A DNA stretch of 64,000 nt from Bugula neritina. Its lineage: Eukaryota > Animalia > Bryozoa. Positions 13,266-56,671 of the stretch are shown in pieces. The notes beneath the pieces were generated by a model. It was not told the origin of the DNA, ran no database searches, and worked only from the letters and a program-made list of their open reading frames with translations. The translations under genes and the position numbers were made by a program. Each line of letters starts with the position of its first letter. The first letter of the stretch is position 1. The stretch lies in assembly GCA_964035545.1 (NCBI GenBank), contig OZ037768.1:24027319-24091318 (forward strand), read 5' to 3'.

Positions 13266-16200
13266 ATGAGTGAAGTAAAGAGAAGGAGAAGTGGCCACGG
13301 GGGACACACCAGGTCCAACAACTCCAGTCGTGAGAGTCTACAGGAAGGAAGTGGTGGTTCCACCGCCAGCTCCGCAGATCTGAGGAATGGCGGCCGGACA
13401 AGAGGGAACAAATCTGCGAGGGGAGGGAAACTCAGGAAATCTGTCAGTACCAACGGCATTGCTCAGGGACTCCGGGGGAACAACTCCATACAAGTTGTGG
13501 TGACTTCCCCTCAGGGAGGGACAACTCCCCAAAAGTCTCTCAGTAATTCCAACACCAGTGTGAACGGCAAGGAGGCGGAGCTTAAGAATGCGAGTAAATC
13601 TGCAGGCAAGTCGGGGAGCACTGGTACCCACCCTTCCCAAAGCAAGGTCAGTTTCTATTATAATCATGGTCTATGTTTGCTATTCATACGCAGTAACCAG
13701 TGTCCGAGCTAAAAGTTATTCCCGTCTAGTTCTTCAAATCATACAAAATATTTGGCTAGAATGTCAGTATGTAAGAAACGGTTTGTTTGAATGTAAAATA
13801 TAATGATTTTGGAGCTACTTTCCACTCTAAGATATTTCTCTGTTTTGGGCGCCGTTAGTGAACAACTGTAGGAATTATCTTCTCCATGCATCAACTGTGT
13901 GAGAGTGAGTAACTCCCAAATCAGTAATTGAATTGGTTAACGCTTTTACTAATACATGTTTGTTTACATTGTACACATCTATCTTATGAAATCATGAGTT
14001 GTATTTTATTACAATTATTATAGCTTAAAGTTTTGAGACGTTAATTTGTCAGTTTTATGAAATTTTACCAATTGAGATTTTATAACAGCCGTTGCTCAGT
14101 TGAAAATATAAAATTTATTCTCCAGTTTATTTCGCTTGTCTCTAACCTATATTCTACTATGGCAATCTCGTGGGTTATAGTGACCAAGTGTCCAAGTTTT
14201 TTATTGGCAATTTGCTGGTGTCTGTATTCTCTAGCTTTAAATCCATAGAATGTGTTGAAGATTGGGGTTTGGGGGGGGGGAGTTTAGAGATACCTTGTGA
14301 ACTAATACTAGACATTGTGATAGAAGCATATAAATAGTCTGGTATCGTATGCAAACATATGCTGTATCTTGATGAATACTAACTCACTGCCCCCAGGGAT
14401 TAACTCAATCAGATAATTGTAGTGTCTATTAATCTGGAGATAATTTTCATTGGTTCAAATTGACATATGGCCGAGATGTGAAATGTAGATAATACGGCAG
14501 TGGTGTACTTTTCTACAGTTAATGACTCTACTCATTGTTCTGCATTACAGTCAAATCCTAAATTACAGGCTTAACCATTCAAATTCTGAGGAAAAAATAT
14601 GTCCTAATTTTTGGTGATATGAGTACTATGTTGATTGACATGAAGAATATTTGATGTTGGTTATGTTGACAATGTTTTATTAACAGTAGTAGACACATGG
14701 TTATGTTGATAACTAGGGCAACTGTTGATACAGTCGACATGCCTACTATATATAGTATTATTGATTACTGCTGTGTGTAGCAGACGAACGGCCAGTGCAT
14801 GAGTCATGACAGAGTGCGTAAGATAGTCCAAGAAGAAGGTCGCTCTGCCAGGAATCTCATTGCCTACAGCCTACCTGCAGTCGACGGGGCAACTAACAAG
14901 CCCGCTAGTGAGTATATGTTATGAGTAGCATTGCTTTACTGTCAGCTTTCTCAAGTGGAAGCTATGTGCTGAAGCTGCTGTGATCACATGACCTCATTTA
15001 CTGTACGCGCTACTTCCACAGATGTAAGAGGCACCATTTGTAAGTTGCTGTTAGTAGAATATTGTGAAAGTGGTACCAGCATACTAGAAAGCTGAACTTA
15101 TTGTTAAAATGAAAAGGAAATGCTGTATAGTTTAAATGTGTGTTGGAACAATTCTTGTGTAATGAAATTAGTAGAAAGTTCTAGCATCTCTATTGCTTCC
15201 GTGAGCTCGCAACTCCTTAATTGTAGCCTTGGCTCTTTCTTTCTCTAATTGTTCACAGCTTCATTTCATTTCGTCTGGGTTGAAATTACTTCTCAGTTTA
15301 TAGAGAGAGTTTCCCAGTCTATAGAGAGAGTTTCTCAGTCTATAGGGAGAGTTTCTCAGTCTATAGAGAGAGTTTCTCAGTCTATAGAGAGAGTTTCTCA
15401 GTTTATAGAGAGAGTTTCCCAGTCTATAGAGAGAGTTTCTCAGTGTATAGAGAGAGTTTCTCAGTCTACAGAGAGTGTGAGTGTGTAGCAGGTGCTTCAG
15501 GTGCTTGTCTACTCTTCCAGGCGTGTCGAAACCCGCCGCCCCCAAGTCTCCGAGGAAGAGACTAGTGACTGGAGTAGGTCGAGACATGAGTCCCTCCACC
15601 CGCAAAGCAGACGACACCTCATCTGTCAAGTCCAGTGGGAGTCGTCCCGCCAGCTCCGTAGGATCTCAGGCTACACGTAAGACGGACGTGAGAGCCAGGT
15701 ACTGGGCCTTCCTGTTTGACAATCTTAAGAGAGCCGTAGATGAGATATACCAGACCTGCGAAACGGACGAAAGCGTCAGTGAGTGCAAGGTAGGTGTGGA
15801 GAGGTAGTAGTGTAGATAGGTGTGACGAGGTAGTGGTGTATATATTATTGATGTGTACCCACACAGTACTAACCCTAACGCTATTTCCCACAGGAAGTGA
15901 TAATGATTCTCCAACAATGTACGAAGGACTTCCAGTCTCTCATCAACCAGTGGAACGTCATCAAAACGTACGAACATCTGGAAGAGTCTGGCCAAAGGTA
16001 TTCCTTGCGGGGCAGACAACTCTTGTTCTAATTCCATTATATGGTTCTTTGAACGTTAACTTTATTTACACCTATTATTGGGAAATCATTTGATGGAATA
16101 TTTCTGTAACTAATATACAACTAGCAGTAAGGATTCACCCAGCATGTGTGAGTATGTCTGGGGACACCAGATAAGTACCGGAATATGGTGGAAGGTTGTT

Positions 16201-25200: not shown

Positions 25201-28200
25201 TGTCATCAGGTAATACTATGATGTCATCAGGTAATGAGATGATATCTGGTAATACTATGATGTCATCTGGTAATAGGATGATGTCATCAGGTAATAGGAT
25301 GATGTCATCAGGTAATGAGATGATGTCATCAGGTAATAGGATGATATCACCATGTCATGATATATATTCCACTATCTACTTTGTGTTGGTTACAGTTACA
25401 TCATCACGGTGGGGATAGTGGACAAGCTACAGAACCTCTACACCAACGTCAGGGGCTCTCTGGAGACCAACTCTAACCTCTTCGCATTCCTCCAACACAG
25501 CATTAGCTTTCTCACTGCTATAACCAAGCTTACGGCATCTAAGAGGTCAGCGTTGCTGCTATGTATTATATACTCTGTTCTCAATGACTTCTCCTTCAGT
25601 GTGCTCACGTGTGGCCGGTGTTGTAGACCTCACGGTGCGTTTGAGGCTACGAAGGTGACGGGTTCGGAGGAGCTGCTGCAGACGTACGAAGACATTGAGT
25701 TGGCCGGCATCATGTCTCTGCTCTACGGGATGCTGCTGCATAATGTGCCCACTAGAGGGGAGACCTCCACCCCGCCCACAATATCCTCCAATACTCTTAC
25801 AGTCACTCTGGTGGGCCTCAAGCTAATTAATCAGCTGGCAACAATGGACCTTCACTTGGTTCAGGTTAGTGTCTAGTGTGTGTATGACTACCACATTACA
25901 TCGTATTACAGTGTCTAGTGTATGTATGACTACCACATTACATTGTATTACAGTGTCTACTCTGTGTATGACTACCACATTACATTGTATTACAGTGTCT
26001 AGTATGTGTATGACTACCACATTACATTGTATTACAGTGTCTAGTGTGTGTGTGTGACTACCACATTACATCGTATTACAGTGTCTAGTGTATGTATGAC
26101 TACCACATTACATCGTATTACAGTGTCTAGTGTATGTATGACTACCACATTTCATTGTATTACAGTGTCTACTCTGTGTATGACTACCACATTACATCGT
26201 ATTACAGCGTGTGTTGGGGGCAGAAGGCGTGTCGCTGGAGCTACGGCATATCACCAGTTACCTTATATGGTATTGTACTCACCATTTCCAGGACAACGAG
26301 GAGTTGCTACACGAAGTTATATTGTGTATTGGCTACTTCGTCGTACTCAACTCTGACAATCAGGTATACAGTCAACACCAACCCTGGTACTCAGTTAAAC
26401 ATAGTGAGTAGTGAGTGAAACTGAGTGAGTAGAGAGTGAGACTGAGTGATTAGAGAGTGAGAGTGAGTGAGGAGAGAGTGAGACTGAGTAATTAAAGAGT
26501 GAGACTGAGTGAGTAGAGAGTGAGTAAAGAGTGAGACTGAGTGAGTAGAGAGTGAGACTGAGTGAGTAGAGAGTGAGACTGAGTGATTAGAGAGTGAGAC
26601 TGAGTGAGTAGAGAGTGAGACTGAGTGATTAGAGAGTGAGACTGAGTGATTAGAGAGTGAGACTGAGTGAGTAGAGAGTGAGACTGAGTGAGTAGAGAGT
26701 GAGACTGAGTGAATAGAGAGTGAGACTGAGTGAGTAGAGAGTGAGACTGAGTGAGTAGAGAGTGAGACTGAGTGAGTAGAGAGTGAGACTGAGTGAGTAG
26801 AGAGTGAGACTGAGTGAGTAGAGAGTGAGACTGAGTGAGTAAAGAGTGAGACTGAGTAATTAAAGAGTGAGACTGAGTGATTAGAGAGTGAGACTGAGTG
26901 AGTAGAGAGTGAGACTGAGTGAGTAGAGAGTGAGACTGAGTGAGTAGAGAGTGGGTAGAGAGTGAGACTGAGTGAATAAAGTGATGTAATATGATTCACA
27001 GGCTGTCATACAATCCGGACAAAGACCCACAATCCTACAGCAGCTCTGCTCGCTACCCTTTCAGTACTTCAGTGACCCGAGACTCGTACACATTCTCTAC
27101 CCGTGTCTCATTTCCTGCTGCTACATGTGTGAAGGTAACAAACTCGTCATAGAAGAGGAACTCAGCTGTGACTTACTTGCCAATTTCTTGGAGGTAAATT
27201 TTCTCTACTTTTGACAGTTTTTTGTGACCTATTTTTACTCTATGCGACCTATTTTTACTCTATGCGACCTATTTTTACTCACTGTTATTTATGAAGTTTG
27301 TGAAAAGTTGCACATTTAAAATGACTTTGTAGGAATCACTACTGCAGCAGCAACGAAATTCGCTGCCTAACAGTGCCGGCAATAGAAAGAGCACCTCAGG
27401 TAAGATTAACATTTTATTGCCACAGATATTAGTATGAGTCACACTAGATATTAGTATGAGTCACACTAGATATTAGTATGAGTCACACTAGATATTAGTA
27501 TGAGTCACACTAGATATTAGTATGAGTCACACTAGATATTAGTATGAGTCACACTAGATATTAGTATGAGTCACACTAGATATTAGTATGAGTCACACTA
27601 GATATTAGTATGAGTCACACTAGATATTAGTATGAGTCACACTAGATATTAGTATGAGTCACACTAGATATTAGTATGAGTCACACTAGATATTAGTATG
27701 AGTCACACTAGATATTAGTATGAGTCACACTAAACTCTGCATGTAATAAAGGAATGTCTAGTTAAAGGAAAATGTGAATCAAATGGCTTTACTTGGAAGT
27801 TTAATTTTCTAACACTTTAATAATAAGTTGTGACCAAAAGTTTAGTTATTGGCAACTCAATTCAAGCCACCTTACAATCCCTTCTGTCCGTTTGTATTAT
27901 TTTATTTTGCTGAGACAATTTGAGTCAAGACTTCAATTAAAGCTAAATGTAGATAGAAAGAGTCGTGGAGTAATACTGTATAAGGGAGGTTAGGCAGGAG
28001 TCCCTAACATAGATTAACAAGTTAGAACTTAGGCAATGGTGTTGACAGCAACAACATAAGTTATCATGATTTTATTAATAATAACTGAAATAATAGTATT
28101 ATTAAAGCAATGTAGTACGTTATAATAACGATATAATTTAACATAATGATATTAATAAAGTTAATTGTTGCATAATTAATATTATTTTATTAAGAAAATC

Positions 28201-29610: not shown

Positions 29611-31398
29611 TCACAGGCAGCCGGCATATCTCGTTTATTCCGTCCAAACTGTTCGAATTGACAGTGAAAAGCCGATTAAATGTAGCTTATTTATTTGTGA
29701 ATAGAGACGTATGTTATCATTTTCATTGCATGAATGAGAATAGCTCATTGGATAATCACAAATATATACTGTAATGTGATTTTATTTCTTTTTTGTTGAC
29801 TGCTGATACAATTATCTTATTTCTTTTTCTTTTACTTTTTTTAAATGTTTGCTTGAGTTTTGTGTTTTTGTTATTGAAGTGTTTTGTATCTTATAATACT
29901 ATAACATAGTTGAGTTGAACTAGGCATTATATGCAGCATTTCTGTGTGCAATAAATTCTCTGCTAAAAAACTAAATTCCTTCATTTGCTCAGAACTGAAG
30001 ATGTTTTATAGGCTGAGATTGTTTCAGTGCGTGTAGCATTATAATATGTAGTATATCATGTAGATTGTAGTGCATGTAAAGAGAGCTTAGAATCCTAGAA
30101 ATTATATAATAGAGAGCTGGGAATGCTAGAAATTTCCCGCTGCTGTCAAAAATTTGGATTACTAGTCATTCATGCGAAATCCCTGCCAAAACTGCATCTA
30201 TTTAAGGACAGATAATAAGGCTTGGGGTAAGCTAATCAACGCTGAGATAACCCGAATAATTACACAAATAATTAGCATTGTGTATGCAAGATATTATTAC
30301 CAAGGCTATGAAGATATTATTACTAGGGCTATGATGTGTAATTACATTGTCAACGGATTTCGTACCACTTAATTAGTATTATAAACATGAAAATTTGATT
30401 ATTGAATTATATTTGTGATTTGATGATATTGGTAGAGCCTCTGCTGCAAGCAAATCGTGTATAAACAAACCAGTCTCGCATGCAAAAGCAGGTGTCCGGT
30501 GGGCACGGCATTCTCAGTCTATTTATAGACTGTGAGCCTCTTTTTGTGAACTCTTCCATGTCAAAGTAGGGGTGGCAAAATTTTGTAACCAAACACAAAA
30601 TTAAAATGACTTTTACTGAATAATGATTTTAAAAGTCAATAAAACTTGAAACTTTATCGTTCAACCAATTGGGATAATTATTGGTATAATTATTGATCAA
30701 ATGTTGAAAAATAAAGCATAATATTTTTGTTTGGCTTTAACTTGTGTTTTAATGAAATGATATAAATAAGTGCTTACATCCATTAGTTGTAAGAGCTACT
30801 AGGTATAAGCTTATAATTAAAATACAATTTTAATAGTTGAATTCCCAAATTTCATATCATTTTGCATATAAGTTTGAATTAAAAAATTACCATCAAATTT
30901 TCTTTTAATTCAACTCCAATAATCAATTGTAAAGCAATTACTACACTGGCACAATGTATCTACCCACACATGGGAATTGGGTTTATTTATAGAGAATTTA
31001 TTTTCAAAAAAGTTCATAAAAAAGCTGTAAAGCTGTTTGCAAGTAATGTATATTTATAATAAAATAGCCAAACAATTTCAAACATAATAATGTAAATAGT
31101 TGAAAACAATCTACATACAATCTAATCATTGAATGCTATCTAGAAAATATGGCCATAATAATACTGCAGTAATGATAGCAAAATAACAAAATAAATTCAA
31201 TACATAACGTCATTATTATGTGCAATAATTTACAAATAAATACAAATTGCCACAAATGGGCTAAAAAGAGTTTTTATTTTAGAGATTATCAACTAAGATC
31301 AGCTGTCATTATAACTATGAGAGGAAACGTTTCCGTGGCAACAGTTTAGAAGCATTTTGAGTGAATTTGTATTTATTAATTGAAATTCATGCCTATGG

Positions 31399-39102: not shown

Positions 39103-39216
39103 AGTTACGGAATATTTTATACCTTTAAACTATAATTGTCCAAATATTTCCTTTAGACAATAGCAACAGCAATAATAACAGGGTACAAGCCTGTATAATT
39201 AAGCTAAATCGTTATA

Positions 39217-39351
39217 TTTATAAAATAGATGTGCACTTTCCCTATCTCATGTGTGTTTGCAGTAGAAAGCTATCCTTATGATAGAAGAGACACCTTACTT
39301 TCTATAATATACACTCGGATTATTATAGCTGGCATGCTGTTATCTGATTGG
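39217..39351 (-). promoter_or_regulatory. Possible Islet proximal promoter elements (CCAAT box, TATA-like)
   Basis: Minus-strand GACCAATCAG at about 39344-39353 and TATAAA at 39222-39217, upstream of the Islet ATG. These motifs are weak evidence in AT-rich DNA. Confidence 0.25.
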
Positions 39352-42300
39352 TCAGTTGAGGTGTTAATTATTTATGGACGACCTACAGTGGAACTATATT
39401 GCCCTGAGGCAGTGTGCAGCTGCAGACGTTGAATAAAAACTACACGAAATGGAAATCTGAAATAAAAACCTTATTGGGTCTAACAACAAAACAAAATAGT
39501 TTAAACAACTTTTAGAACAAATTTATATGTATGCATATATTTTTTTAAATAGGCCTATATAATATTTCATTCTAAAGAGATTTATTATATAAATTCTAAG
39601 GCATTCATTGAAAAAAGCTTTGCCTAAAGCTATTTCAGAAAATGTTATCAAATCAATTCTAGAAAAAGCTGATCAACTAAAAACTACTATGCCCATGTAG
39701 GCGCTGTGTAACCGGGTGAACGGGAATAAATAAGTTTACTGCAACAAACCCAACACCTTGCTGATGGGTTTAGGGTATTATGAAGACTTTCACAGGTGAA
39801 GTAAACAAGAAAAGGCATTTTGACAGGCAAATTCATAAAGCAGTGTCCTCAGACAAAAATGAGGTACATTTTAACCAGAAGGGTCTAATTGATATGTGAC
39901 ATTGTAATCTCATTAATACTGTGTATGTATAACAGCTAATATTATGTAATAACAGCATCACTCGAATAGTTTCCTAGTAATCCCATTAATTTTAATTGAT
40001 TCTAATTTAGTTTCAACAAAGGTTGTACCTATTTTTATTTGTTAGCTGAAAGTCATATGACTGTAAGGCTCCACAAGTCACTGGTTATTTTGACAATGTA
40101 GCAATGTTTAGAAATGTTTGGTACATTTCTTACTTTAGTACTTTAAAGTAGAACAATTTATGTAACTAAAAGGGTACATTGCTATTATTTCATGATATTA
40201 TATTATTTCAAGAAGGGAGCAGCTATATATTATGGTCTAGGGGTTAGAATATTTGGCTCAATAAACACGAAGTTAGAGTAAAGAGCCAGAGTAAAGCCCA
40301 TTGGTGATGCTAGGAAGAGCATCCAGTCATAATTGCTCCTGTGCCCCATCTGAATAAGTCTTTAGCCAATTTAAAAAATCCTTCCATCCGGGGTTTGTCA
40401 ACAGCCTTCAAACAATTAAAATATAATTTAAGTTTCTTTAACCGCTCATCTGTAGCTGTATGATAATTATTGATATGATATTTGCTTTAACATTCATGAC
40501 TCTTACCTTTTCATAACTAAAACTAAAAGAACACTGACAGACATTGAGTTGGTTTCTATCGGTTCAGCATAAAATTAGTGATACTAACCAGTAGCAGACT
40601 CTATAAAATATAAATATTTATTACTCTTTTGGCACTTTTAGAAAATGTTATGAGTAATTTCAAAAATAATTTAGTTTTTTTTCTAGTAAAAAGAGTTAAA
40701 ATAGTTAGGAGTTAATTGAAAAGTACCACTTTAAATGATTAAGTGTTCATCTTTCAGTTAGATACTGGACATTTATTGCAAAAAATTGCATGGTGGGATG
40801 CTCTGAGAAGAGAGATAGAATGAGAAGCTCTTACTGCTTGATTCCAACAGTTGGCTATCATATAATATATAAAATAGCAACTATAGCCAGCAATTAAAAT
40901 CTTCATATGGCACGTGTGAAAAAACGTACAAGCTTAAATGAAATTACATATTTTTTTGATGTTTTTAATCATTTAAGGCATACAATTTATTTATTTATAC
41001 ATTATAATGTTGGCAAAAATATTTTCCAACCTTTATGCTGGGCTTTATTTTTGAAACATTTTTAATGATTATCTTTAATCAAAAATAATATTTTATTAAA
41101 GTTACAATCAAAGCATAAATAAGTTTTTGATTTCAGGCCATTCATGCAGATTTAATGTTCACTAATTTAAAGTATTGTTTGTATTCAAGCAATTAGGCAA
41201 ATAATTTATTTGATTTGTTGGTTTATATAAACTTATATTCAGGTTGGTTGTAAAGGGGATGGAGGTTTCCCATGATCTGATTTGATGTTATAAACAATTC
41301 GATCAACCATATGCAAATAGCGTGTGCATTCTTAGCACCTGTAGAGAACCTGCACACCCATGTCAAGTTTGCATAGAGTAAGGTATTTGTGTGTAGAAAC
41401 CGAATGTCATCCCTACCCATCACTATTTGAACAGCTCAAAAATAATAAAAAATTTGAACTTATTATTTTGATAAAAAAATTAATGCAAATAAATGTGTTG
41501 AAGTGAAACTTGTACAAACATACATATTCAGTTTTGCTGCATTGATGAACAATACTGCAAAGAAAAGCAAGTCTATAACCAGCTTGAAACAACAAACTCA
41601 GCATTGTTTGGTGTGAATAGAACTGCATGTCTTTAACACATACTAAACAAATACTATCTAATCGTGGCCGTGTGCAGTTAATAGACTAACATCCATGCTA
41701 CGTGCTTCTCCATTTCAAATGAACACGATATTTTCGTACAACCCAATAAAACTTTTTATCTTAGAAATAAAATATTTGTAACTTTAAGAAAAAATGCCTT
41801 TGATGTTTGAAGTTTTGATCATGTAGGAGTTGAAATCAATTTCCTTACACGAGAAATAGAAGCCAAATTAAACTAAACAATTTATTTTACATTCTTTACT
41901 TTGTATTAAAAACTTCCAGTACAATATCGGAAAACAAAATATGTTACAGAAATAAAATTTTGAGCTTTTTAAGTTAGCTATACTTCTTGCTAACAGTTAC
42001 ACTTTTGATTCTAGAGTATATTTAAAAGATTTTATGTTTTGGTGCACACAAGTTATATTCACATATTCTAAATACATTTTATTAAAACATGTTATTTAAA
42101 ACAATTATTATTTTACATCCTAGATGGAGGATTTTTTTTCATCTATCCAGTTATAAAAACAATGAAACTAAATTTTTTCTAGCACAAAAAGTTATTGAAA
42201 ATTGCATTTCCACTAACTCTCATTTCAAATATTCACTAGCATAGACACAAACTTGGATCAATCAAATTACATGGAGGTAACGGAGCTAAAAGTTTACAAT

Positions 42301-43757
42301 GGGTCAATGATTTCAATCTGAGATAAACTTCAAAATTTAAGAAAGCTTGTCAGCTGGAAATCATGAGCTTACTGAGTGCAGACAAATGTGTTTCGTATCT
42401 ATTCAGTCAGGAGTATTGTGAAGTGGTGTGTATACACGTGTCTTGTGCTGGTAATACATATCAAAGAGTGCATTTCACCTAACTTATGGTAACTTTGTAG
42501 TTAAAATTTAGTGCTTTACCATTACTTAAACATACACCCTATAACAACATCAACTGCTGCAATAGAAGATATAGAAACAAGCGTGCCACTGTGCTAATAT
42601 TACTCCAAGGTCTTATAAATATGGCACAAGTTTCATTTCAATATTATTCCAAATTTTTGCCAGCTGATGTCTGATTATAATTGATTCAACTTGTCACAAT
42701 ACAAACAACTTTAAAACACACTTAGTGGTGATTAAGTGAATTAGGGGGCAGGGATGAGGCATTTAAAGGAGGATTAGCAGAGAATTCTGGACTCAGTTGG
42801 GTATAGACCAACTGCCAAGGCTAACTTACTTACACTAATTGATGGGATTAATTATATTAAGACAGACCGATGGCACAAGCCAGCAGCAGCCGTTGACTAT
42901 ACAATCCACGTTCAGTAGAGAGTTGGTAACCTCTTAATGGTACTTAATGCAGCTAGTGCTGCCCCTGTATCTGCCTTCACATAATATTTCAGTACCAAAC
43001 ACTACTTCCTTTTAAATTCTTAAAAATATTAAAATACTTATTAATTAGCTTTTCTTGCTGCTATAGAAGGAAAATAAAATTTATTTACAGACAAATATTA
43101 CTTGATGTCTGACAGATTTTATGATTTTGATTTAGTGGAGCAGCCCTATACTTGATTCGCTAACTTTTTCAGACCTGGAAAACATTTGCTGCCTTCTCAC
43201 GCTGACTCTACCGGATGTCCAACTGCTGCTCCTAAAACCATCACATCCAATAAACTCAACACGTGCAGGCAGCACCTCTGAGAGTAAATTAGTGAAGTGT
43301 GCGTAGGAGATGCTCAGGAGGCCAGCCGTCTGTCTGTCTGTTCACCATTGCTTTTAATATTATACTGCCATAACGCTGATCCTACCAACTTTATTTTAAA
43401 CTTCTTGAACTTAGCAAATACTAACTGTAAGCTACTAAATAATTCAAAATTTTGCTCTATTATACTACCCTGCCCTACAATACATCACACTACACTATGT
43501 CACATGATGCTATGTCACATGACACTATGTCACATCACTATGCACCATAGCACAATAAAATGAGCTGTGTTAACACTGCAGTGCTCAGTAGCAGGAAAAG
43601 AAAACAGTTGTGATAATTTAGGGAGAAGGTAAAATTGTAACACCAACATATATCAGTACAAACACAGCTAGATAACACCATGTGCATCACTGTGTTTGTA
43701 TAAGACTCATTAGCTTGTTGTATTCTGTAATACTGTTGTATATAGACTGATAGCACA

Positions 43758-43882
43758 TACATAGGTGTTATACACTGCCAGGGGTGGATACATAGGTGTT
43801 GTACATTGCCAGGGGCGGATACATAGGTGCTATACACTGCCAGGGGTGGATATATAGGTGTTATACACTGCCAGGGGTGGAT
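43758..43882. repeat. 31-bp tandem repeat (TACATAGGTGTTATACACTGCCAGGGGTGGA)
   Basis: 4 copies; related CCACCCCTGG units occur in inverted orientation at about 44300-44357. Confidence 0.85.
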
Positions 43883-45217
43883 AAAATGCTTTAGGCTGGA
43901 AATGATAGGTAGCTTGCAGAAGATTTTTTAAAATAGTATATGATATTATATGTTTTATTGTTAATAGTGTATAAGTCACAAGCTGTAATGGAGAAGGATT
44001 AGTTTTATTGAAGTATCGCAAGTTTAAAAAATATATTCAGTTGTTGCTTTCCTAAGGAGTAGCTCTGGGACGTCGAAGCTTGCTGTTTGCCAGCAAGTAG
44101 CTATAGAATGTTTAAGAATTTAAAACTCTTTCTAGATTAGAAAGTAAAGTCAATGTTTATGAATGTCTATTATGAAAATAAAGTTAAACCATAAAGCAGT
44201 ATTACAAAGAGCTTTTATAAATAGAGAGATTATTATCCACATGATTTAGTGCTATAATTCACCCCTAAGGCCAGTACTAATTCACCCCTAAGGCCAGTAC
44301 TAATCCACCCCTGGAGGAAGAGCTTATCCACCCCTGGAGAAAGAGCTATCCACCCCTGTGTGTTGAGTTGTGAGGTTTGGGGAAGGAAGTTATCAGGCAG
44401 ACAGTAGCTGGAGACAGAGTTATCATTTGGGTGTTTGTTATGAAGATTAATTAGTGACATATGAGGTGTATATAACAGATATGAGTAAGACAAAACATTA
44501 CCACTAGATTAGAAAGTGGTAACATGGTCACAGGTCTCCTATCTCTCACTTCAGCTATTTTTATATCTCTGCACATACCAAACAGAAGTTGCAGCAGCTA
44601 TTTTAGGTTATGGAAGTCATGACACCCTTAGTGTAAATATATCTGATCGGAAATAAATAACTTCCAAACTAAACTTATGTATATAATACAATAACATATA
44701 TACAATATATTATATATATATATAAATATATATATAATGCATTATATAAAATGTATTGCATTAAAATAAACATTCTGTTTTATTGTAATGTTATAATTAT
44801 ATATTTTATCAATAATATGCTATTACTATATATTTTATTGTGGCTATTGTAATTATATATTATTTTATTTTATTGCTTAAGCTATGCATTGTATCATATT
44901 ATTGCTATTACTATGCATTTTATCGTATTGTTATAATTATGCATATATTTTATTAATATGTTATAACTGTATATTTTATTATGATGTCATAACTATATAT
45001 TATTTTATTGTATTGTTATAGCTATATATGTTTATTGTATAATTTATATTAATTTACAAGATAAAAAACTCGCCACCAATTCCAAAAACATTACAGTAAT
45101 TAAATGGATTGACTATGATGAAACTTTCCATGATATATAGATATAACAAATCAGGGTAAGTAATCAGTCCATATAGGAACAACCGCTGCCGTTACTTGCT
45201 GCCGCTACTTGCGCTGA

Positions 45218-48200
45218 CTATACCTTCTCTATCATCTCGGGCACAGCCTGTAATCAAACACAGCCGATCAATAAAACAACTTGAAAAGACAATCACTGTA
45301 CACAATGAATTTCAATGAACGTTTCACTGACTTGAATTGTGTTGAGACTTGAGAGTGCAAATCTGTCAACGTCTGTATAAACATGAGACTTACAGAGTGT
45401 ACAGCAGACGGACAGACACACAGACAGACAGGAAATAGTAACTCAAACAGTTCGTATAAATATTATGTAATTTATTTACACATGAATACTTACACAAATC
45501 AAGTACTAATGTTAATTGTATTTAAGAGAAAGTTGAAGTAAATAAAAGCACATGTTAATTGATATTACAGCCCCACTGGTTGAAGGAAGAGAAGCTGGTT
45601 GTATTCAAAAGTCAAATAAAATCACATTTTATTACAAATTTGAAAATTGCATGATTGTCAAAATTGCATGCAATATTTTTCCACTCACAAGATATAGAAA
45701 TTCAAACACTATTTAACAAACTCTCTGTTGGTTATATTAGAAAGGTAGGCCATGGGTAGTCCAGGTGAGGAAATTTGATAATAATTATAAATATAATTAT
45801 GATATGTAAACAGAGGGCATAGCAGCAGGTGCTAATTACAGCTAATAGGTGGACTGTTGAATATAACACCATTGAAGTGTGTCGTCTAATCATCTACATA
45901 TTGGCTGACAAGTTAATTGCAGCTCAAAAAATGAATCATCCAATCAGAGATCAGCAGGAGCCGTGAGTTACCCACTTCAACTCAATGCCACTGAATGGAA
46001 ATTAATAAGGAAATATTGTCTACCATACTATAGGAGGGGTGAGCACTCATGTGAGGGGCTTTGAGGTGACCAAGGGGCATATTGAGGTAACCAACAGGCA
46101 TTTTGAGGATCAAGTAGCCATCCATAATCATTTGTAAACCCCAGAAGTACATAATTGTAAACATTAGTGCCTCAAGGCTTCAGTTCTCATTGGATGAGTT
46201 TAGACACTTGAGATTCAAATAGAGAGAAGTGTTGATGGGCCATTGAACTGTTGAAAAGCTGCGTTGAAAGAACTTAATAATTCTCTTAATATTTTCAACC
46301 AACACACAACAAGTTGTTACACTTAGAGAAAAAAAATTCACCAAATCAGGCAAATTCTAGAAACTTCTTTTGCTAACTTGGCAATTAAATCAAGCATTAT
46401 GATTTACAATGATGAGGAGAAACTGCAATATGTTGGTGTGAATTGCATGAAATAGTTGATATTAGAGAGAGTTGAATTTTCACCACAGTTGTCAGTTTGT
46501 GTCATGATTTCCAATTAATTAGCACTTTCGGCAGAGTAAATGCTCTCCACATTGAACATAGCCAACACTGAAAATTAATATTAATTTGAGGTGTTACTAA
46601 CTAGGAATTAAATTAGCAATAGTAGTAGTAGTAAAGTTAGTAGCAGTAGTAGTAGTAGTGGCATGTTAGTAGTAATAGTAGTGGTAGTTACAGTGACAGT
46701 AATATCAATATAATAGTAGTAGTGATAGTAATAGTAGCTGTATTGGTAAAAGTAACAGAAGGTGTGAAGTTCCATAAAGTTGTGTTTGAAAGAGAAGACA
46801 ACTCCTGAAAGCACAGCTAACCAAACAGTAAATAGAGTTTGAGAGTTATCTGTCCAGAGTGTAATGACTAGAGAAAACTGTGAGCATACCGAGAGGCAAG
46901 AGAGGTCTAGGAGCTAAAATCAATAAATCAGGTATTTACTGATGATTCACATTCCTAGACAGCACCACGGTGAGAGCCAATGAGAGTCTTACAAGGGTGA
47001 CATCATAACAACAGCATTTCTCTGTTGCCACGCCTTAACTGTCTAGTGAACTCAACTCTCATCTGATTACTTCAAAATAGAGAAGTTAGTTAACTGACCT
47101 TGAAAAGGTCGGCAACGAGTCCGTAGTCAGCCACCTGAAAAATTGGAGCCTCAGCATCCTTGTTGATGGCTACAATGACTTTGCTGTCCTTCATCCCCGC
47201 CAGATGCTGGATGGCCCCGGATATTCCGACAGCGACGTACAGTTTCTGGAAATATTCAGGAGAGCAGACATTACACACCCTGTCCCTTCAGTTGTCTCCC
47301 CTTTAAACAGGAGAGATAATTACTCTACCTCTCTCCCTTTACACAGGGGGAGATATTTACTCTACCTCGCTCCCTTTACACAGGGGGAGATAATTACTCC
47401 ACCTCTCTCCCTTTACACAGGGGAGATAATTACTCTGCCTGTCTGCAGGAAATAACTGGACTTACAGGTGCAACTATTTTCCCAGTCTGACCAACTTGCA
47501 TGTCATTCGGTACAAAACCGGCATCTACAGCGGCTCTTGACGCCCCCACGGCAGCGTTCAGCTTGTCAGCGAGATCATACAGCATCTGGAAATTCTCTCC
47601 ATTCTTCATACCACGTCCTGAAAACAGACAGAGTTTATACTCTTACTGCTACCACTACCACTACTAATACTATTAGTACTGCTACTATTACTGCTCCTGC
47701 TACTACTACTACTACTGCTACTACTAATACTATTAGTACTGCTACTACTACTAGTACTACTACTACTGCTACCACTACTAATACTACTAGTACTGCTACT
47801 ACTACTACTGATGACTCACCTCCAGAGATGACGGTATCGGCACTAGTCAACTCTGGTCTGTCACTCTTACTCAACTCTTGACCTTCGAAGGTCGTCAGGT
47901 CATTTGTTACGTCAGCAGAAACTAGTAATGAAAACTTTCAATGTGTAGACAACTTTTACATAAACAAATGACCATAAATACAGTTAATAGTATCTAGTAT
48001 AGTTAGTGGTATATATAGTGCAGTTGCTAGTATATACAATACAGTGACTAGTACACCCAAGAGTGGACAACTTCAAGTACATACACGGTTCGGCGCTGGT
48101 GCTGCCCCCCAACTCTGCTGGAGGAAAAGCTGTGGAACGGACTGTGACTATCTTGATGGGGTCTTTGTGCTTCAACGTCATAATTGCATTACCTGCGATA

Positions 48201-50056
48201 GAAATTACCTGCGAGATAAATTACCTGCGAGATAAATTACCTGGGAGAGTACAAATTACATGTGCTTAGACCTAATTCTACAAAGCATTAGTTTGGAATT
48301 AAGCTATGGAACTTTTTGATCCAGAATCTGAAGCTACAATAGTTTGTCTTCATTGTAAATGCTAAGTTTATTAGTAAAATATATTAATGAAAAGTAACAA
48401 AAAGTAGTTCATTGAGCGATCTTATGCTGTAGACTGACGTACCGGCATAAATAGGTCGGACAAACGTATCGGGATCTTCTATGCCTATGATGTCAGATAT
48501 CGGACTAATATCTAGTTTGGCAGCTACTCTGGGTAGAAGGTTCTAGAAGTACATATCACGGGATTAGAATGAATGACCAGTTCTTAGCAACGTTACAATT
48601 AACTAATGTAAAGCTTTGAGTATAACTCTATTATAATACAGTATGAGCTGTTGATCTGTTCAATAGACCTTTACATGGCTGTGTCTGCAGCTAACAGTAT
48701 AATGAAATAGTATGCAGTATAATGGAATAATACGAAGTATAATGAAATAATATGCAGTATAATGAAATAATATTGTAACTTGAAGTAAAATACTACTTGG
48801 TGACAGCACATTTGTTTGTGTCCATTATTCATCAGTGCAGAACGAATAAACAATACATTTTCATTCTAGCCAATGATAGAACGAGAAATTTGGCGAACTA
48901 TGTATCACCTCACGCTATACATTTTGCTCATGATAGTAACATATATGGATATTATAGACTTACTTTGCCAAATGCAGAGGCGTTGGAGAAGATGTGAGTG
49001 AAATTGAACTGCTTGTGTGCCTCAAGAATGACTGGAGTGAGAGACTCGGCAAGGAAACCTTTGAACACGGGATTGTCAGCGAGCAGGACCTTGCTGACCC
49101 CCTTCACCTTGCCAACCTCCTCCGCTACCTGATAGGTAGTTCATGAATTACTATACATGATAAGGTATATATCAGTTAGTAGAGCTCTCAGCTGGCTCAA
49201 ACTCTAAGGGGGGGGTTATTAACTAACAAATCTTAAATTTGTTGAATTTTATCATCTGAATCTATATAATAACTCTGGCTTGGTAGACACATTAGTTTCT
49301 GCTATTTGTGAAGGCTTGACCTTGTGCTATGCTAAAGAGGGGACAAATCCTGAAACAGCTGCTGTATACAGATTGAGTCACAGATGGGAGAATGGAATAA
49401 ACTAGTGTTTCTACCAAAGCACTTATGAAAGGTGTTTGAATTTAATTCATAGTTCAAAAGAATCTCTAGGAATTACGTGCCCAGATAAACATACCTGATG
49501 ATGAAACACAGCATTTCTAATAATAAAATGATTTAATCAAATATTATCATAACATTCCTCTTATACTACAGGTACGCAGTCACTTGTAACATACGTACCT
49601 TGGCGCAGTCTGTTCCAGCCACCAGACACGTAATATCTCCCCCTACTTTAGATGCCGCTGTGAGAGTGTTGAGTGTAGAGGCTTGTAGACTGGCATTGTC
49701 ATGCTCACACACGACTAGCGTACTGGCAAACCTCTGGGCCAGTGAATTCTAACACAGAAGATCAGCCAATATCACTGATAGTCATTTTACACATTTTAAG
49801 ACCCAATTCCAAACATAAGCACTTATACGACTAGTTGATTTTAAATAGATGGTAAAAAATATCAATGCATATATGATTGTGAGATGCATGCAAAAGGGGG
49901 TTGAGTTATGCAACAAAGTTTTGCATTAAATTTAATTGCTTAAAAAGTTTTGAAAATTAAAGATTTGATAATGTGAATTATCATAATATAGGCAATTATA
50001 AATATTCAACTCACCAGTTGCTTATGTAGTGTAAGAACTCTTTTGAAAGATAACAT
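45218..50056 (-). CDS. ETFA: Electron transfer flavoprotein subunit alpha, mitochondrial
   Basis: Nine exons: 50056-50015, 49748-49599, 49128-48964, 48542-48443, 48192-48085, 47921-47820, 47617-47466, 47245-47099, 45247-45218 (TAG). Presequence-like [26 protein letters not shown]. Motifs: [27 protein letters not shown]...[56 protein letters not shown]...[22 protein letters not shown]. Confidence 0.97.
47645..47812. repeat. (ACT)n-type trinucleotide tract in an ETFA intron
   Basis: Imperfect ACT/GCT/AAT repeats. Confidence 0.85.
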
Positions 50057-51990
50057 TTTTATCTCTAGTTCAATGAATTAAGCTGAAATTACTAAAAATA
50101 CAAATATAAAAGTTGAAAAATAATTTAGAAATACTCATGATCGAAAAAATAGATTAGAAATCAATTAGCAACGCACATATTCATAATGATAATTACAATT
50201 GTTGACTTTTATCATTTTTATTTTATTAATAAAAACTGTTTTAATTATGATCAAACTGTTTTAGTTTAACAATAACAATAATTATAATAATATTAATATT
50301 ATTAAATTTAATTATTATTTATATTAAAATACTTAAATTAGATTAAGTTGATTTATGTATATTCATTATTTCGCTATCATTATGACTTTCAGGCATGAAG
50401 TTGCAAATTCAGTAATTTACTTTTAATGCATTTGTCACTCTTAGAGATGCAAATTCAACATCCTAAATTAGAAAATACCAAAATTAACTTTAGACTGCTC
50501 AGCAAACTTATATAAAATGAAAATATTTCAATGTGAAGGTTATGTTGTTACATTGATGTCTCTTTTGCTAGCAAACCTTAGCGCGGGCTTATTTTCATCA
50601 AATGCCCATAAAATCAATGAGACTTGCAAAGAGGTTAAGTGCTCACAGGCTTTAAATGCTTACTCTGTTGAGCTGCTTTGAGAGACATCAAGCTGATAAT
50701 CTGGTCAAAGGTTATCCATATACCAATCACCAATGGTTATTATAATAATGATACTTCACAATTGTCACCATTGTCATTGCTGAAACTCAGGGCAAAATGT
50801 GGAGTAGTGTGCTTGTAGAGTAATGCTGCTTGCTATAGGTATAAGTATATCGCTAAAACTGTTGTAGATCCAAATCTAAAGATCATTATGATTATGGTTA
50901 TATATATATAATTATATTTATATTATTATTAATATATATTTAATTTTATGATAAAAATATACTGAAAGTGAAATAGTAATTCAAATTGAAATTGTGAATA
51001 GTCAATACTCAATAACTTTCAACTCAAAGTAACTTCTACTTTAAAGTCATACTGATAGTTTAAACACAAACACTAATACTAAGTTTTACATACTTCAAGT
51101 CACTGAGCTGGAATAGATATTATTGAGTTCGATGCTTCAAGTTTAAGGACTAAAAGTAAAAGTAATTGTTACAGTTAGTGTTACTAGTGTCACTACTACT
51201 AGTACTACTACTACTACTACTACTACTACTAGTCTAGTTAAGTAGTTTTACTTTGTGAGTAGAGTTTCTCATAGAAAAATATTCACTTTTACAAAATTCT
51301 GGTGAATAGGAATAGCTCTAGTGCATAGTGATAGTTAGACATGAGTCATGGTAATTTACAGTTTGGTAGATTTAATTTTATGCTGATAATTTATCAGAAT
51401 CATAAAATTTATTATTCATGACATAATCAGAATGATAATAGGATAGCCTACTATTTAAAACTCAATCTAAAGTTTTAGTTTCTAATTGCTGTTTTAATAA
51501 ACTGTTTAATTGCAGTTGTTGATGGTTTCAAATAATCATATTTCAAAAACAGCTATGATGGATTAGATAACAACAGGCTGGGCATATAATGTCAATAAAT
51601 TACTATTTGCATTTAGTTTTACTCATACTGGCTATGCTTTTCTATTGTGTTCAGTATGGATGGAAAAAAATGGTCCATGTTGTATATTCATGTAAGTAAA
51701 ATATAACCATGGCTATACACCAGTTTTTAAATTAAATTATGTTTCTAATTGTTAGTAATCATAATGGAAGGAAATTCAACATATGGAATCTAATTCTTTA
51801 TTTGTTAGTGTTTTATGGTGTGATGTAAATAAAATCTAGTTCATGTGATAATAGGAGTCATTATTTAATCACTACTTCCTTTTTAGATTGAGCACACAAT
51901 GAGCCAAGTTGAACACTTTTTCAGTGGTTTGATATTCACAGTCAGTTGAAAGTGTTTCTGATATATTCTTAGTTGTGTTGGGCACTTAAG

Positions 51991-54900
51991 ATGGGGACAA
52001 AGGCTAGGTTAGTTTGACTACTCAAGTATAAAATGAAAACTTTGCTATTCTCCTCTGAGACAAGCTAATGAAATGTTGCAGTTCTTGTTTCAATATCCTT
52101 GTTGGTTTGCTGTTAGTAATGAGGACATATTGGGCTGTGAGATAAATACCTCGTGTTACAAGTTATAAAATGGAAGTGAAGATTTAGTAATTGAATAAGT
52201 ATGACATGCGTTAGCTGACTGAAACATAAGCTGTTTCATGGAAGTGAGGCTATTTTCTCGTGTCATACTATATATTTTTTACTCAGTCTCATAACATGTC
52301 ATTGTGTTTCCCTAATCTAGAGCTCATATCTATGAATCAAAAGCAGGAAAAGATGAGGCTGAAGATAAAATTGTCTGCTTCAACCATTCCAAAGAGCTGG
52401 CCAACATGAGGTTAGAGGGCGTGACTTAGTCTAATAAGTAACTGTTTGAGATTATAGGGTTATCTCTTAGACATGTTTCATGTGGTTACTCACTGAGCTA
52501 AAGGGTTGTAATATTATGTTCTGATGTTAAAATAACCCCCTTTTTACTACATCCTTGTTCTAAATATTTAGGATCAAAGTGAAAAAATAACTTGAATTGA
52601 CTGAAAGCTCTGGGATTTAGCATCACACGGTGATACAGTTTAATTTACTCTTGGAATGGTCTAGTGTTGACATATTTCACTACACACAGTGAGATATTCC
52701 AATATTATTTCACTTGGTGGAGTTGTCCCTCTTTTTCAGATGTCATGAGAAAGTAGATTTCTTTCTACACAGACCTATAGTTGAGTACGTGGTGATATTT
52801 CTTATAATTGCCGATGCAATTCTTGTGACAGCGTCACTTCTCCTTGAAATAAAGATAATAGAGCAATCAGGTTAGAGTTGTCTCATCTCATTTAGTTTTA
52901 ATTTTTATTCACGAAATTTAATGTTGAAAGTGAAAGGTTACTAGACCCCTGTAAACAAATGCCATAACAGCATTTTCAATGTGTTTTCTAATGAATTTAA
53001 CAGTGAAAAACTGACTTGAAATCAAGTCATATATTTCAATATATCATAAGAAATAACGATGACATAAATTGTTTTACTCTGCACACTGAACTTGTGTGAG
53101 AATTGAAATGAAATGGAAATGAGGAGTATACATTGAACAGCTGTTATTTTAGGGAGTTTGTGTGGGGTAAGTTTCTATGACAACCATGACTCATATTTCT
53201 ATTACACTGGCTAGGAACATTCCAGAAGTATTCTCATTAAACTGCCTTCTTTTTATTTGCGTTTCATGTTATATTTCGAGGCTGAAATTATCAACTGGCT
53301 GTAATTTTATTTGCTATCAACTTATGCTGCTTTAAAAGTTGCAAACATTGTATTTCTGTAGTCGGCATTATTTCTGAGCAAACTCATGGTACTTTGTTTC
53401 AAGTTGAAACAATATTTTGTAACGAAGCTGAAATAAAATGTCGACTGATACACCGCCCTCTGGTGGACATCAATTCTCTAATCTAATTGAGGATATTGTT
53501 TGGCAGCATTGTGATTTCTAACCTGATTCAGACAACTTTGTAGAAAGTGCCCCGCTGTGCTTGTCTTTATTATTTAATGCAACTTGACCTTGACATGACC
53601 TTGATGTGACCTCTGTCACTAACTTTCTCAAACAAACATCTTTTACTTCTTATAAGTTTCACGCTAACATTTTTTTGAAAAAGTTGATCAGAATGACAAA
53701 CTTTTCTGTAGCTACTCCTATTTATCTCTTTCTATTAGTACCTCACGCACTCGATAGTCACCGTTACGAATCTCCTGTCTTACTGTAGCTGAAGATGCTG
53801 TGACAGCCACCACCACCACCGCATCAGGAGCCACAACTCCTCATTCCGCTAGTCATAGTAGTCTAGATGTGGCCGCAGAAGCCCTGCACATTAGCAGCTT
53901 AGTCATTCTCACTCTCTTTCTTATTGAGGTAGGAAAGATTCATCTGTTTGCTGTGTTTGGTTGGCGTGTAAAACTCTGACATTCTGATATTGATGTGTTA
54001 CTTTGCAGATATTTCTCAAGTTGTATGGACAAAGAGAGAAATTCTTTAAGAGGAAGTTGCAAGTGGTAGATAGCTTTATAGTGGCGATATCGTTTGGCCT
54101 TGACATTGCGGTGCTGATCATCAATGATATTGACTCTAGTATTATCAACGGTCTCGGCCTCATCATCATTCTACGACTCTGGAGATTTGTGCGGATAGTA
54201 AATGGTAGGTGTTTATGGTATGTAGGAGTGGAACCAGCAGTGGGTGGTGTGTAGGGGTGTAGCCAGCAGTGTGTGGTATGTAGGGGTGTAGCCAGCAGTG
54301 TGTGGTTTGTAGGGGTGGATTCAGGGTCTCTAACCATTATATCACAGCATATATCTGGAATAGTATACATTTGTTTTCATTCAATTAGATTCCACAGTTT
54401 CAATTCTATATGATTAAATACAGTATCTGTAGAAGTGAGAATCATCATGTGTCACATTCATCATCTGCCTGTCAGCATGTGTCATATTCACCACCTGCAG
54501 CTGCCTGTCACCATGTGTCACATCCACCACCTGCAGCTGCCTGTCACCATGTGTCACATCCACCACCTGCAGCTACCTGTCACCATGTGTTTCTGTCTTC
54601 TGCAGGTGCTGTCGTAGCGACTAAAGAGAAGCTGTCAGAGGAAATGCATGAAGTTAAAAGACATAACGCTGAACTCACAGAGCGAAATGCAGAACTCGAG
54701 GTAACTACGGCAACCTCCCTAACAACACATTGTTTGACTACCAGCAGTGTATAGTAGTACCTGAATATAGTCAACAGTGTATAGTAGTACTTGAATATAG
54801 TCAACAGTGTATAGTCATACCTGAATATAGTCAACAGTGTATAGTAGTACCTGGATATAGTCAACAGTGTATAGTAGTACCTGAATATAGTCAACAGTGT

Positions 54901-56671
54901 ATAGTAGTACCTGGATATAGTCAACAGTGTATAGTAGTACCTGAATATAGTCAACAGTGTATAGTAGTACCTGAATATAGTTAGACTCTCTCATTCCCTT
55001 AGATTGTCACAGCTCTTCTCGATTTGTGACCAAGTTGCAGTTTATTCAAGGGTTGTGTTCTCTGTGTGAAGTGTGTAAGAGAGTGGGTGACTCCCAACAC
55101 CTCAATGTAAAAGCTCTGCTCTGTATTACAGCTGGCGATAGAGAACAAGGAGAAGGAAATAGACTTCCTGAAAGGGAGGTTGGCGAGATACGAGCCAATA
55201 GACATGGTGCCCACCGGCTCTACCCGACTTCCTGCGTGTTAGTATATTTCCTGTTTTACATTCTACCAGGATGGGGGGGGGTAAAAATGTGCCCTCGATG
55301 TGTTATGATAGCATGAGTGATACTTTGTGTAAACAATAGTGACTGCTTTAGTTAGTAAAGTGTTGTTTGAACATTTCACTCTCTCATCACCCTCAGGCTT
55401 GAATACAGCAATCTAAGGCTATAGTTCAACAGGATGGAGGTGGGGAGGGAGGCTGATGTAAGGAAGATATTATTAAAGCTCTAAACTGATACAAATCACA
55501 AGCTAGCAGTTGACAGTCTGTAGTGTGAAAAGAGTGAACTTATCAGCTGCTCTGATTACAATAACATTTCTATTACACAGTCTTATCTGTTACATCTTTC
55601 CCAGCTTCCTTCATAACTGACAGCACCTTATCTGAACATGTGATTCCTTGTCACAGCATAATTGTTTAAACACTGCTGTTCTTATTGCAATAATTCTTGT
55701 AGGGGGGGGGGGGTTGTGACATTCGCATTGTTTACATTGACTCACAGTCTATGCTTTCCTGTAGCCTGTGAACTCAACTTTACTTTATGTGAGGAAGGTA
55801 GGCCTCTCAGCTATTGTAGAGGTTGACGTATGCCCTCATGACATCACCAGTGACCTAAATAATCTGCTGCTTGCAGTCTATTTCAATTCCAAACGTTAAA
55901 TATTTTCCAACTGTTGTTAGATCTGCCAGAGACGAGGGAATTCCCCAAACAGGTGCTGGGAGATGTTACGGATGACGAGGACTACAGGGTGCAGGGTTTC
56001 GCAGGTCAGTTGATTGTTTCCTTTTTTACCAAAGAGTGGTGGTTCGCTGGTGGGTGTGGAGGTGTAGGTTTCGCTTAACTTGAGTTTCTGTTTGTGTGGC
56101 GTGACAAGAGCATTGCTAGCTCGTAAGTTGAATTATTACCTTGTAGACGTGCACCATACGACAGGGAAGCCCAGAATTACTCTAAGTACTGCAGGTACGG
56201 CTTTCCAGGCCTACCAGCCCGGAGCCACGTACCAGCCCACCAGCCAGTACCCCACCGAGCAGCTCCACAGATCCCCCAACGCTGTCGGCAGCAGTGCCAG
56301 ACTAGGCAGTGGTGGAGAAACTGGTGGGGGCTATAGGGGGACTGAGGAGCCAGGAGTGGAGACAGCTGATGAATCAGATGTTGTGTCTATAAAACCTGCC
56401 AAATACAGGAGTGGAAATACCTTTACAGTGAAAAAGGTGAGTAAGGGGGTGGGGGGAGTGTGGTTATTGAAAGGTGGAGGGGGCGTGGTTATTGAGAGGT
56501 GGAGGGGGCGTGGTTATTGAAAGGTGGAGGGGGGGCGTGGTTATTGAAAACTAGATATTTTGTATCTAGATAATAAAACTGGTTTATTGAGCTATTAATA
56601 GCAACACATTGCCTGCTGCCTACATAATGTTTATATTTCTGTAGGATGGAGTTCCAATGACCTCTTTATGA
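51991..56671 (+). CDS. Voltage-gated proton channel (Hv/HVCN1-TMEM266 family) with a long C-terminal tail
   Basis: Exons: 51991-52007, 52321-52410, 52740-52870, 53789-53928, 54009-54204, 54606-54700, 55132-55237, 55921-56004, 56195-56436, 56645-56671 (TGA). S1 VVIFLIIADAILV (Asp112-equivalent), S2 LHISSLVILTLFLIEIFLKLY, S3 VVDSFIVAISFGLDI, S4 LIIILRLWRFVRIVNG (RxWRxxR plus Asn). A coiled coil follows, there is no pore domain, and the protein ends DGVPMTSL*. Confidence 0.9.
54465..54980. repeat. 33-bp (54465-54590) and 30-bp (54742-54980) minisatellites flanking one Hv exon
   Basis: Units CTGCAGCTGCCTGTCACCATGTGTCACATCCAC.. and CAACAGTGTATAGTAGTACCTGAATATAGT. Confidence 0.88.

Follow-up and report, generated by a model that had tools for sequence, protein, structure and literature searches.

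A stretch of 64,000 nucleotides (nt) from contig OZ037768.1 of the bryozoan Bugula neritina, referred to here in its full length as the window, carries a block of four adjacent genes (positions 13266-56670). These are SCAPER on the forward strand, a LIM-homeobox gene of the Islet class and ETFA on the reverse strand, and a voltage-sensor gene of the Hv family on the forward strand. The same four families occur in the same order in vertebrates, where the sensor gene on the ETFA side is TMEM266. We give a probability of roughly 45% to the reading that TMEM266 is the much-changed heir of an intron-rich second Hv gene that lay beside ETFA, Islet, and SCAPER in the bilaterian ancestor, that the ancestral block thus comprised at least four genes, and that the canonical Hv1 gene was partnered separately with a DUF1168 gene. 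The narrower proposition, that the adjacency goes back to a common ancestor by one-to-one descent, seems to us about evenly balanced. In favor of common ancestry are the very low chance of such a match, the old paralogy of both sensor genes, and the features of gene structure that they share.

The four-gene block is real. An initial annotation, made from the letters of the window, had placed the four genes side by side, and domain matches confirm each of them at its place and on its strand. SCAPER was recognized by an exon open reading frame (ORF) at 15481-15804 that matches the Pfam family SCAPER_N with an E value of 1.8e-20, and the ORF of its last, C-terminal exon lies at 29485-29607. Copy numbers were counted in the whole genome of 216 Mb, in which SCAPER_N is matched only at the window locus, so that SCAPER is single-copy, and in which ETFA also occurs once. 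The homeodomain of the Islet gene matches ISL-1 with 116 bits, compared with at most 55 bits for every other homeodomain, and the best match of its second LIM domain is again ISL-1 (95.7 bits). The same annotation had detected no other gene between the four, and we likewise find no gene detectable by Pfam, tRNA, or Rfam searches in the spacers. The ten longest ORFs of the three spacers gave no Pfam match. The spacer between Islet and ETFA contains seven ORFs of 67-129 amino acids (aa), none of which reaches the Pfam family cut-off, and the ORF at 50472-50678 between ETFA and the Hv gene also falls below it. No tRNA or Rfam family was found in the spacers.

The vertebrate order given in the initial annotation for human 15q24, TMEM266-ETFA-ISL2-SCAPER, is correct. 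The human and goat gene lists give the four genes in this order, and the annotated locus of the fish Menidia (L016) contains TMEM266 (+), ETFA (-), and the LIM-homeobox gene ISL2 (+), with ETFA and Islet confirmed there by tblastn. The fish strands also agree with the earlier proposal that, compared with vertebrates, both ETFA and the sensor gene have been turned around and form a divergent pair in the bryozoan. In the fish locus TMEM266 and ETFA are arranged tail-to-tail, and ETFA and ISL2 head-to-head with 2 kb between them, whereas in Bugula the heads of ETFA and the sensor gene face each other and the tail of ETFA points to the head of Islet over 10.3 kb.

According to their main texts, Irimia 2012 (PMC3514665) and Touceda-Suarez 2020 (PMC7530604) describe Islet-Scaper as a deep genomic regulatory block that extends from sponges to humans, and the first of these bears out the view of the pair as an established conserved block. 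The bryozoan locus resembles this block in that the Islet-class gene adjoins SCAPER in a convergent orientation, with 2.3 kb between the two 3' ends; the tail-to-tail arrangement had been noted before. The initial annotation also took it as established that SCAPER introns harbor enhancers of Islet. The main texts of these papers name the pair only, without ETFA or an Hv-family gene, whereas two more genes follow in the window. We found no literature linking ETFA or TMEM266 to the Islet block, which for Irimia 2012 refers to the main text.

The vertebrate sensor protein TMEM266 (HVRP1, C15orf27) is non-conducting and brain-expressed; Hv1 is the protein closest to it, and it has been described as confined to vertebrates, with no known invertebrate ortholog (Papp 2019, PMC6392501). 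It is marked by Val-111 at the filter site of S1, Met-185 in S3, a lysine before the third arginine of S4, and an aspartate after S4 (PMC6392501). The fish TMEM266 sequences carry these residues, including the lysine and the aspartate. For the window gene, the exons were aligned to 14 family members. S1 has an aspartate in the selectivity-filter column (Asp-112 in human), S2 keeps the histidine, phenylalanine, and glutamate, S3 keeps both aspartates, and S4 reads RxWRxxR with the conserved tryptophan, followed by Asn-Gly. These residues are hallmarks of conducting Hv channels. The window gene thus belongs, in intact form, to the Hv (voltage-gated proton channel) family and keeps the proton-conduction residues of Hv1. 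The sites occupied by Val, Met, Lys, and Asp in TMEM266 are Asp, Asp, Val, and Asn in the window gene.

The S3-S4 exon matches human Hv1 with an E value of 4e-9, which is the best match to a solved structure, and the match to Pfam Ion_trans is weak and covers profile positions 47-106 only. Scored exon by exon, the window gene reaches at most 19 bits with a TMEM266 profile versus 60-69 bits with Hv profiles, and canonical, non-canonical, and non-bilaterian Hv profiles perform about equally, so that the scores do not tell these Hv groups apart. When the sensor domain of fish TMEM266 was used as the query, the best 120 of 682 hits were all fish TMEM266, with no invertebrate among these.

The gene was searched exon by exon and its splice sites were read from the sequence. 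The nine coding exons total 1026 nt, so the reading frame closes, and the predicted protein has about 341 aa. Contigs of at least one related species contain seven of the nine exons in conserved, colinear form; these contigs stop short of ETFA and do not extend to the first coding exon (5 nt) or the exon for S1. In a close relative (contigs L028 and L029) the exons from S2 onward are colinear with 72-85% DNA identity, and the S3-S4 exon is 88% identical at the protein level. In a more distant relative (L030) the exons from S2 onward are conserved except for the last two. Conservation does not extend to the introns. The exons for S1, S2, and S3-S4 run directly into a putative coiled-coil exon, giving a sensor without an S5-S6 pore domain. 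After S4 there is a weak match to a Pfam family of the coiled-coil type (ZapB, E 0.003), and a heptad-like run extends across the two exons that follow S4. About 184 aa of the predicted protein follow S4; this tail is partly of low complexity and has no sequence similarity to the TMEM266 tail. The predicted protein ends in Thr-Ser-Leu, the form of a class I PDZ-binding motif, and this last block is conserved in L028.

With canonical Hv1 (HVCN1 in vertebrates) the window gene shares all signature residues and a putative coiled coil, and it differs in its locus, its intron set, a longer S3-S4 stretch, and a longer C-terminal tail; canonical Hv1 is present as a separate copy elsewhere in the same genome. 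With TMEM266 it shares the predicted succession of an S1-S4 domain, a putative coiled coil, and a long tail, the position on the ETFA side, the longer S3-S4 stretch, and introns before S1, after S1, after the S2 glutamate, and after S4. It differs from TMEM266 in the length of the tail (about 184 aa versus about 310 aa) and in having no S3 intron. A long disordered tail of about 250 aa after the coiled coil is a feature of the TMEM266 family.

Intron positions were mapped by exact protein-to-locus matching in 11 annotated genes and were assigned by visual inspection for the second Trichoplax gene and the three other Hv-family genes of Bugula. The Bugula genome has four such genes on three chromosomes: the window gene, the canonical Hv1 (L002), and two further genes (L003 and L004). 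The window gene has at least eight introns, of which four match Trichoplax and TMEM266 in position and phase. They include a phase 2 intron 13 residues before S1, a phase 1 intron just after S1, a phase 0 intron after the S2 glutamate, a phase 1 intron in the glycine after S4, and a phase 0 intron in the coiled coil. The intron in the glycine after S4 is universal among the mapped genes. The introns before S1, after S1, and at the S2 glutamate are common to the window gene, fish TMEM266, both Trichoplax Hv genes, and the non-canonical Hv genes of Pecten, Pinctada, and Pycnogonum; the post-S1 intron of the window gene sits two codons later with its phase kept. All three are absent from each of the seven canonical Hv1 genes (fish HVCN1, two amphioxus genes, Glandiceps, Priapulus, Owenia, and L002), and L002 and the Hv1 of the annelid Owenia have a single coding intron. 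The distance from the S3 aspartate to the first S4 arginine is 23 residues in the window gene. TMEM266 and the non-canonical genes have 22-23 residues in this stretch, compared with 18-21 for canonical Hv1.

An intron-rich structure common to TMEM266 and lost from canonical Hv1 makes the window gene an old paralog, as the proposed descent needs. By parsimony, if the canonical introns were lost once, the window gene would have split from the canonical line before the divergence of protostomes and deuterostomes. Duplications of unconventional Hv genes have been placed in early lophotrochozoans (Chaves 2023, PMC10377628); the intron data point to an older split. On the vertebrate side, six intron positions and phases of fish TMEM266, from before S1 to the coiled coil, are common to the non-canonical Hv genes of scallop and sea spider, and five of the six are found in the pearl-oyster gene, the annotation of which stops short of the coiled coil. 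The S3 intron, one of the six, is common to TMEM266 and these mollusc and sea-spider genes and absent in every canonical Hv1 examined. Together these matches argue that the TMEM266 line predates vertebrates. We found no paper on the introns of TMEM266. The annotated protein of the pearl oyster Pinctada imbricata (L026, P0108) has 581 aa and combines an Hv-like sensor with a Branch glycosyltransferase domain, and is probably a merged model. The introns of fish HVCN1 (L025), which lie before S1, before S2, and after S4, differ from the set seen in invertebrate canonical Hv1, and the pre-S1 intron is also present in the 318-aa amphioxus gene.

The intron map also bears on the relation of the window gene to L002. 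Both lie on chromosome piece C4, 0.94 Mb apart, and an approximately unbiased (AU) test does not reject a clade of the two (p 0.31), so the window gene might be taken for a recent bryozoan copy of canonical Hv1. L002, however, has one coding intron, like Owenia Hv1, against at least eight in the window gene, four of them at Trichoplax and TMEM266 sites, and a duplicate of a gene with so few introns could not have reacquired them at the ancestral sites. The S3-S4 exons of the two genes are only 42% identical, and orthologs of the window type are found in other species at 60-88% identity. A recent duplication of L002 was therefore rejected on intron structure, and we regard it as very improbable.

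Canonical Hv1 has a different old neighbor. In four phyla, represented by Priapulus, the hemichordate Glandiceps, Branchiostoma floridae, and the annelid Owenia, it is arranged head-to-head with a gene of the DUF1168 family (PF06658). This looks like an ancient microsyntenic pair, of which we found no mention. The pair is broken in the Bugula genome, where DUF1168 lies at 10.065 Mb and Hv1 at 23.136 Mb of C4, 13 Mb apart, and fish HVCN1 adjoins a tectonic (TCTN) gene. Since canonical Hv1 has DUF1168 as its old neighbor, the site beside ETFA is a separate locus and not the one from which canonical Hv1 comes. An old adjacency with ETFA would then belong to a second Hv gene.

The two remaining genes of the genome, L003 and L004, bring in a further explanation. 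Lophotrochozoans have an expanded and mobile Hv family, and three Hv genes have been reported in bryozoans (Chaves 2023, PMC10377628). Like the unconventional AcHv3 type of that study, the window gene is a non-canonical paralog with an enlarged loop and a larger intracellular part. It differs in keeping a standard S4 motif, without the proline and with the first arginine in place; in this genome the loss of the first S4 arginine that recalls AcHv3 is seen in L003 and L004. The last two also carry the phase 0 intron before S3, which is shared by TMEM266, Pecten, Pinctada, and Pycnogonum. An ancestral cluster of non-canonical Hv genes may have stood near ETFA, from which vertebrates kept the member with the S3 intron as TMEM266 and the bryozoan kept another, while L003 and L004 moved away. 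The position would then be ancestral, and the window gene and TMEM266 would not be one-to-one orthologs. Tandem or nearby Hv duplicates do exist in Trichoplax and have been reported in Schistosoma (Chaves 2023, PMC10377628). Neither lineage has a cluster at the site, however, and a simpler account of these observations is that the window gene lost one intron. We consider this course of events unlikely, though less so than a recent duplication of L002.

Several observations weigh against the descent of TMEM266 from a gene like that of the window. The window gene has four of the five introns of the TMEM266 set and lacks the phase 0 intron directly before the Val-Phe-Asp of S3: either it lost this intron, or L003 and L004 are closer to TMEM266 and could be its true counterparts. 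The introns that it does share occur in Trichoplax as well, so they are retained ancestral characters and no proof of a single clade. None of the residues diagnostic of TMEM266 is present in its aligned exons, and the TMEM266 part of the label Hv/TMEM266-type in the initial annotation did not hold at the level of sequence, where the gene is an Hv of the proton-channel type. The gene model is a prediction, based on the logic of the splice sites and on conservation across species. ETFA and the sensor gene are both inverted relative to vertebrates. No conserved non-coding element was seen in the introns of the Hv gene in comparison with a related species, and nothing in this analysis supports a regulatory constraint.

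The survey and the phylogeny add to these points. From the Hv side, 10 kb in each direction were inspected by annotation and tblastn at 11 other loci of the Hv family, which represent eight phyla: Priapulus, Glandiceps, two amphioxus genes, the Trichoplax pair, Owenia, Pycnogonum, Pinctada, Pecten, and fish HVCN1. ETFA, Islet, or SCAPER was found within this distance at none of them. Three of the loci hold non-canonical genes of species with large genomes, in which a reach of 10 kb is short. The Hv gene beside ETFA that the initial annotation had proposed to look for in other invertebrates did not appear at these loci, which weakens the claim of an ancestral block and does not refute it; the lineages that show the adjacency so far are two, this bryozoan and the vertebrates. 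Trees and AU tests were based on one exon of 65 residues. The window-gene clade on one side and TMEM266 on the other each form a long, unresolved branch in this tree, and L002 groups nearest to annelid and mollusc Hv1. Placement of the window clade with TMEM266 is not rejected (p-AU 0.56), and neither is its placement with L002 (see above) or with the canonical clade (p 0.40). The phylogeny of this exon has no power.

The most serious competing explanation is that the two adjacencies arose independently: an old Hv paralog would have reached the site next to ETFA within the bryozoan or lophotrochozoan line, and TMEM266 separately in the vertebrate stem, leaving a three-gene block and a coincidence. 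The absence of ETFA from the surroundings of the other inspected invertebrate Hv loci and the different orientations of ETFA and the sensor gene favor it, as does the mobility of an expanded family with four copies on three chromosomes in this genome (Chaves 2023, PMC10377628, for lophotrochozoans). The match was also picked out of a large scan, which inflates coincidences and so counts against common ancestry too. Beyond the four genes, Pfam gave no outward extension of vertebrate-like synteny; the flanks yielded only Aminotran_5, FCH/SH3, and TRM. To our knowledge, none of the families Aminotran_5, FCH/SH3, and TRM1 is present in human 15q24. On the other side stands our estimate that a random Hv gene would occupy the exact slot beside ETFA with an expectation of about 1-3 per 10,000 per genome, which takes four Hv genes and 20,000-30,000 genes in total, the latter a rough guess from the gene spacing in the window. 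An intron-rich structure not found in canonical Hv1 and a longer S3-S4 stretch are further points that TMEM266 and the window gene have in common. Independent adjacency is thus a real contender to which we give rather less weight than to common ancestry. Of the ancestral bilaterian four-gene block put forward in the initial annotation, the order shared with vertebrates has held up, and the old paralogy of the window gene lends it new support; its antiquity is unproven, with 0 of 11 other Hv loci showing ETFA within 10 kb.

Under common ancestry of the adjacency, early bilaterians would have had at least two Hv genes, a canonical Hv1 head-to-head with DUF1168 and a non-canonical gene beside ETFA-Islet-SCAPER. 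The window gene would be a little-changed descendant of the second gene, and its predicted protein probably still functions as a voltage-gated proton channel that forms dimers and has a long tail in the cytoplasm. Vertebrate TMEM266 would derive from the same gene by loss of the S1 and S3 aspartates and, with them, of proton conduction. If TMEM266 does descend from this gene, conduction was lost on the vertebrate stem, because the bryozoan copy keeps every proton-channel residue. The gene order may be kept by the regulatory neighborhood of Islet, which is pure inference, with tolerance of small inversions that affected ETFA and the sensor gene.

The positions of the genes, exons, and spacers are given in Table 1. 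Outside the block, an intronless ORF of 322 aa without a Pfam match lies at 1264-2229 (-) of the window, and an Aminotran_5 gene at 8219-9627 (-) is directly upstream of SCAPER. Further upstream, beyond the Aminotran_5 gene, is a gene with FCH and SH3 domains (PACSIN-like; L021), and a TRM1 tRNA methyltransferase gene lies downstream of the block, at 2988-3746 (-) of L023. In the Hv gene, minisatellites start at or beside splice donors and repeat donor-like sequence (54205-54340 and 56437-56545). The same donor-linked minisatellites occur in many SCAPER introns, for example at 15249-15560, 19384-19640, and 25826-27000.

Table 1. Features of the four-gene block (window positions) and the other Hv-family genes of the genome (chromosome-piece positions).
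Feature	Position	Strand	Remarks
SCAPER	13266-29610	+	many exons; introns full of minisatellites; ATG ORF from 13266
SCAPER/Islet spacer, 3' to 3'	29611-31907	.	about 2.3 kb; ORFs tested without Pfam match
Islet LIM-homeobox gene	31908-36776	-	Pfam LIM, LIM, Homeodomain
Islet exon ORF, LIM1	36546-36821	-	ATG at 36776
Islet exon ORF, LIM2	33600-33905	-	
Islet exon ORF, homeodomain	32434-32817	-	
Islet exon ORF, C-terminal	31911-32087	-	
Spacer, Islet 5' end/ETFA 3' end	36777-47089	.	10.3 kb; gene-free by Pfam, tRNA, and Rfam
ETFA	47090-50056	-	Pfam ETF and ETF_alpha (FAD-binding), up to E 1.3e-20
ETFA exon 1	50056-50015	-	start codon at 50056 and first splice read directly
ETFA exon 2	49748-49599	-	
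ETFA further exon ORFs	48955-49140; 48387-48542; 47987-48220; 47638-47937; 47433-47642; 47093-47287	-	stop read from sequence
ETFA/Hv spacer, head-to-head, between start codons	50057-52405	.	about 2.35 kb
Hv-family voltage-sensor gene	52406-56670	+	predicted protein about 341 aa, about 184 aa after S4
Hv coding exon 1	52406-52410	+	
Hv coding exon 2	52740-52870	+	S1
Hv coding exon 3	53789-53928	+	S2
Hv coding exon 4	54009-54204	+	S3-S4
Hv coding exon 5	54606-54700	+	putative coiled coil
Hv coding exon 6	55132-55237	+	putative coiled coil
Hv coding exon 7	55921-56004	+	
Hv coding exon 8	56195-56436	+	
Hv coding exon 9	56644-56670	+	predicted C terminus Thr-Ser-Leu
L002, canonical Hv1	G000:C4:23135034-23138210		0.94 Mb from window gene, same chromosome piece C4; one coding intron
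L003, Hv-family gene	C1:18052385-18055525		first S4 Arg lost (Leu); S3 intron present
L004, Hv-family gene	C3:21431006-21434143		first S4 Arg lost (Leu); S3 intron present

The intron map and the pairing of Hv1 with DUF1168 provide markers, independent of sequence similarity, for sorting the Hv paralogs of invertebrates. Should the proposed descent be true, TMEM266 would not be a vertebrate invention and would gain a history that starts from an invertebrate proton channel of working appearance. The route from a channel to a non-conducting sensor would become testable, in that one could ask which substitutions abolished conduction, and the Islet-Scaper block would grow from two genes to four.

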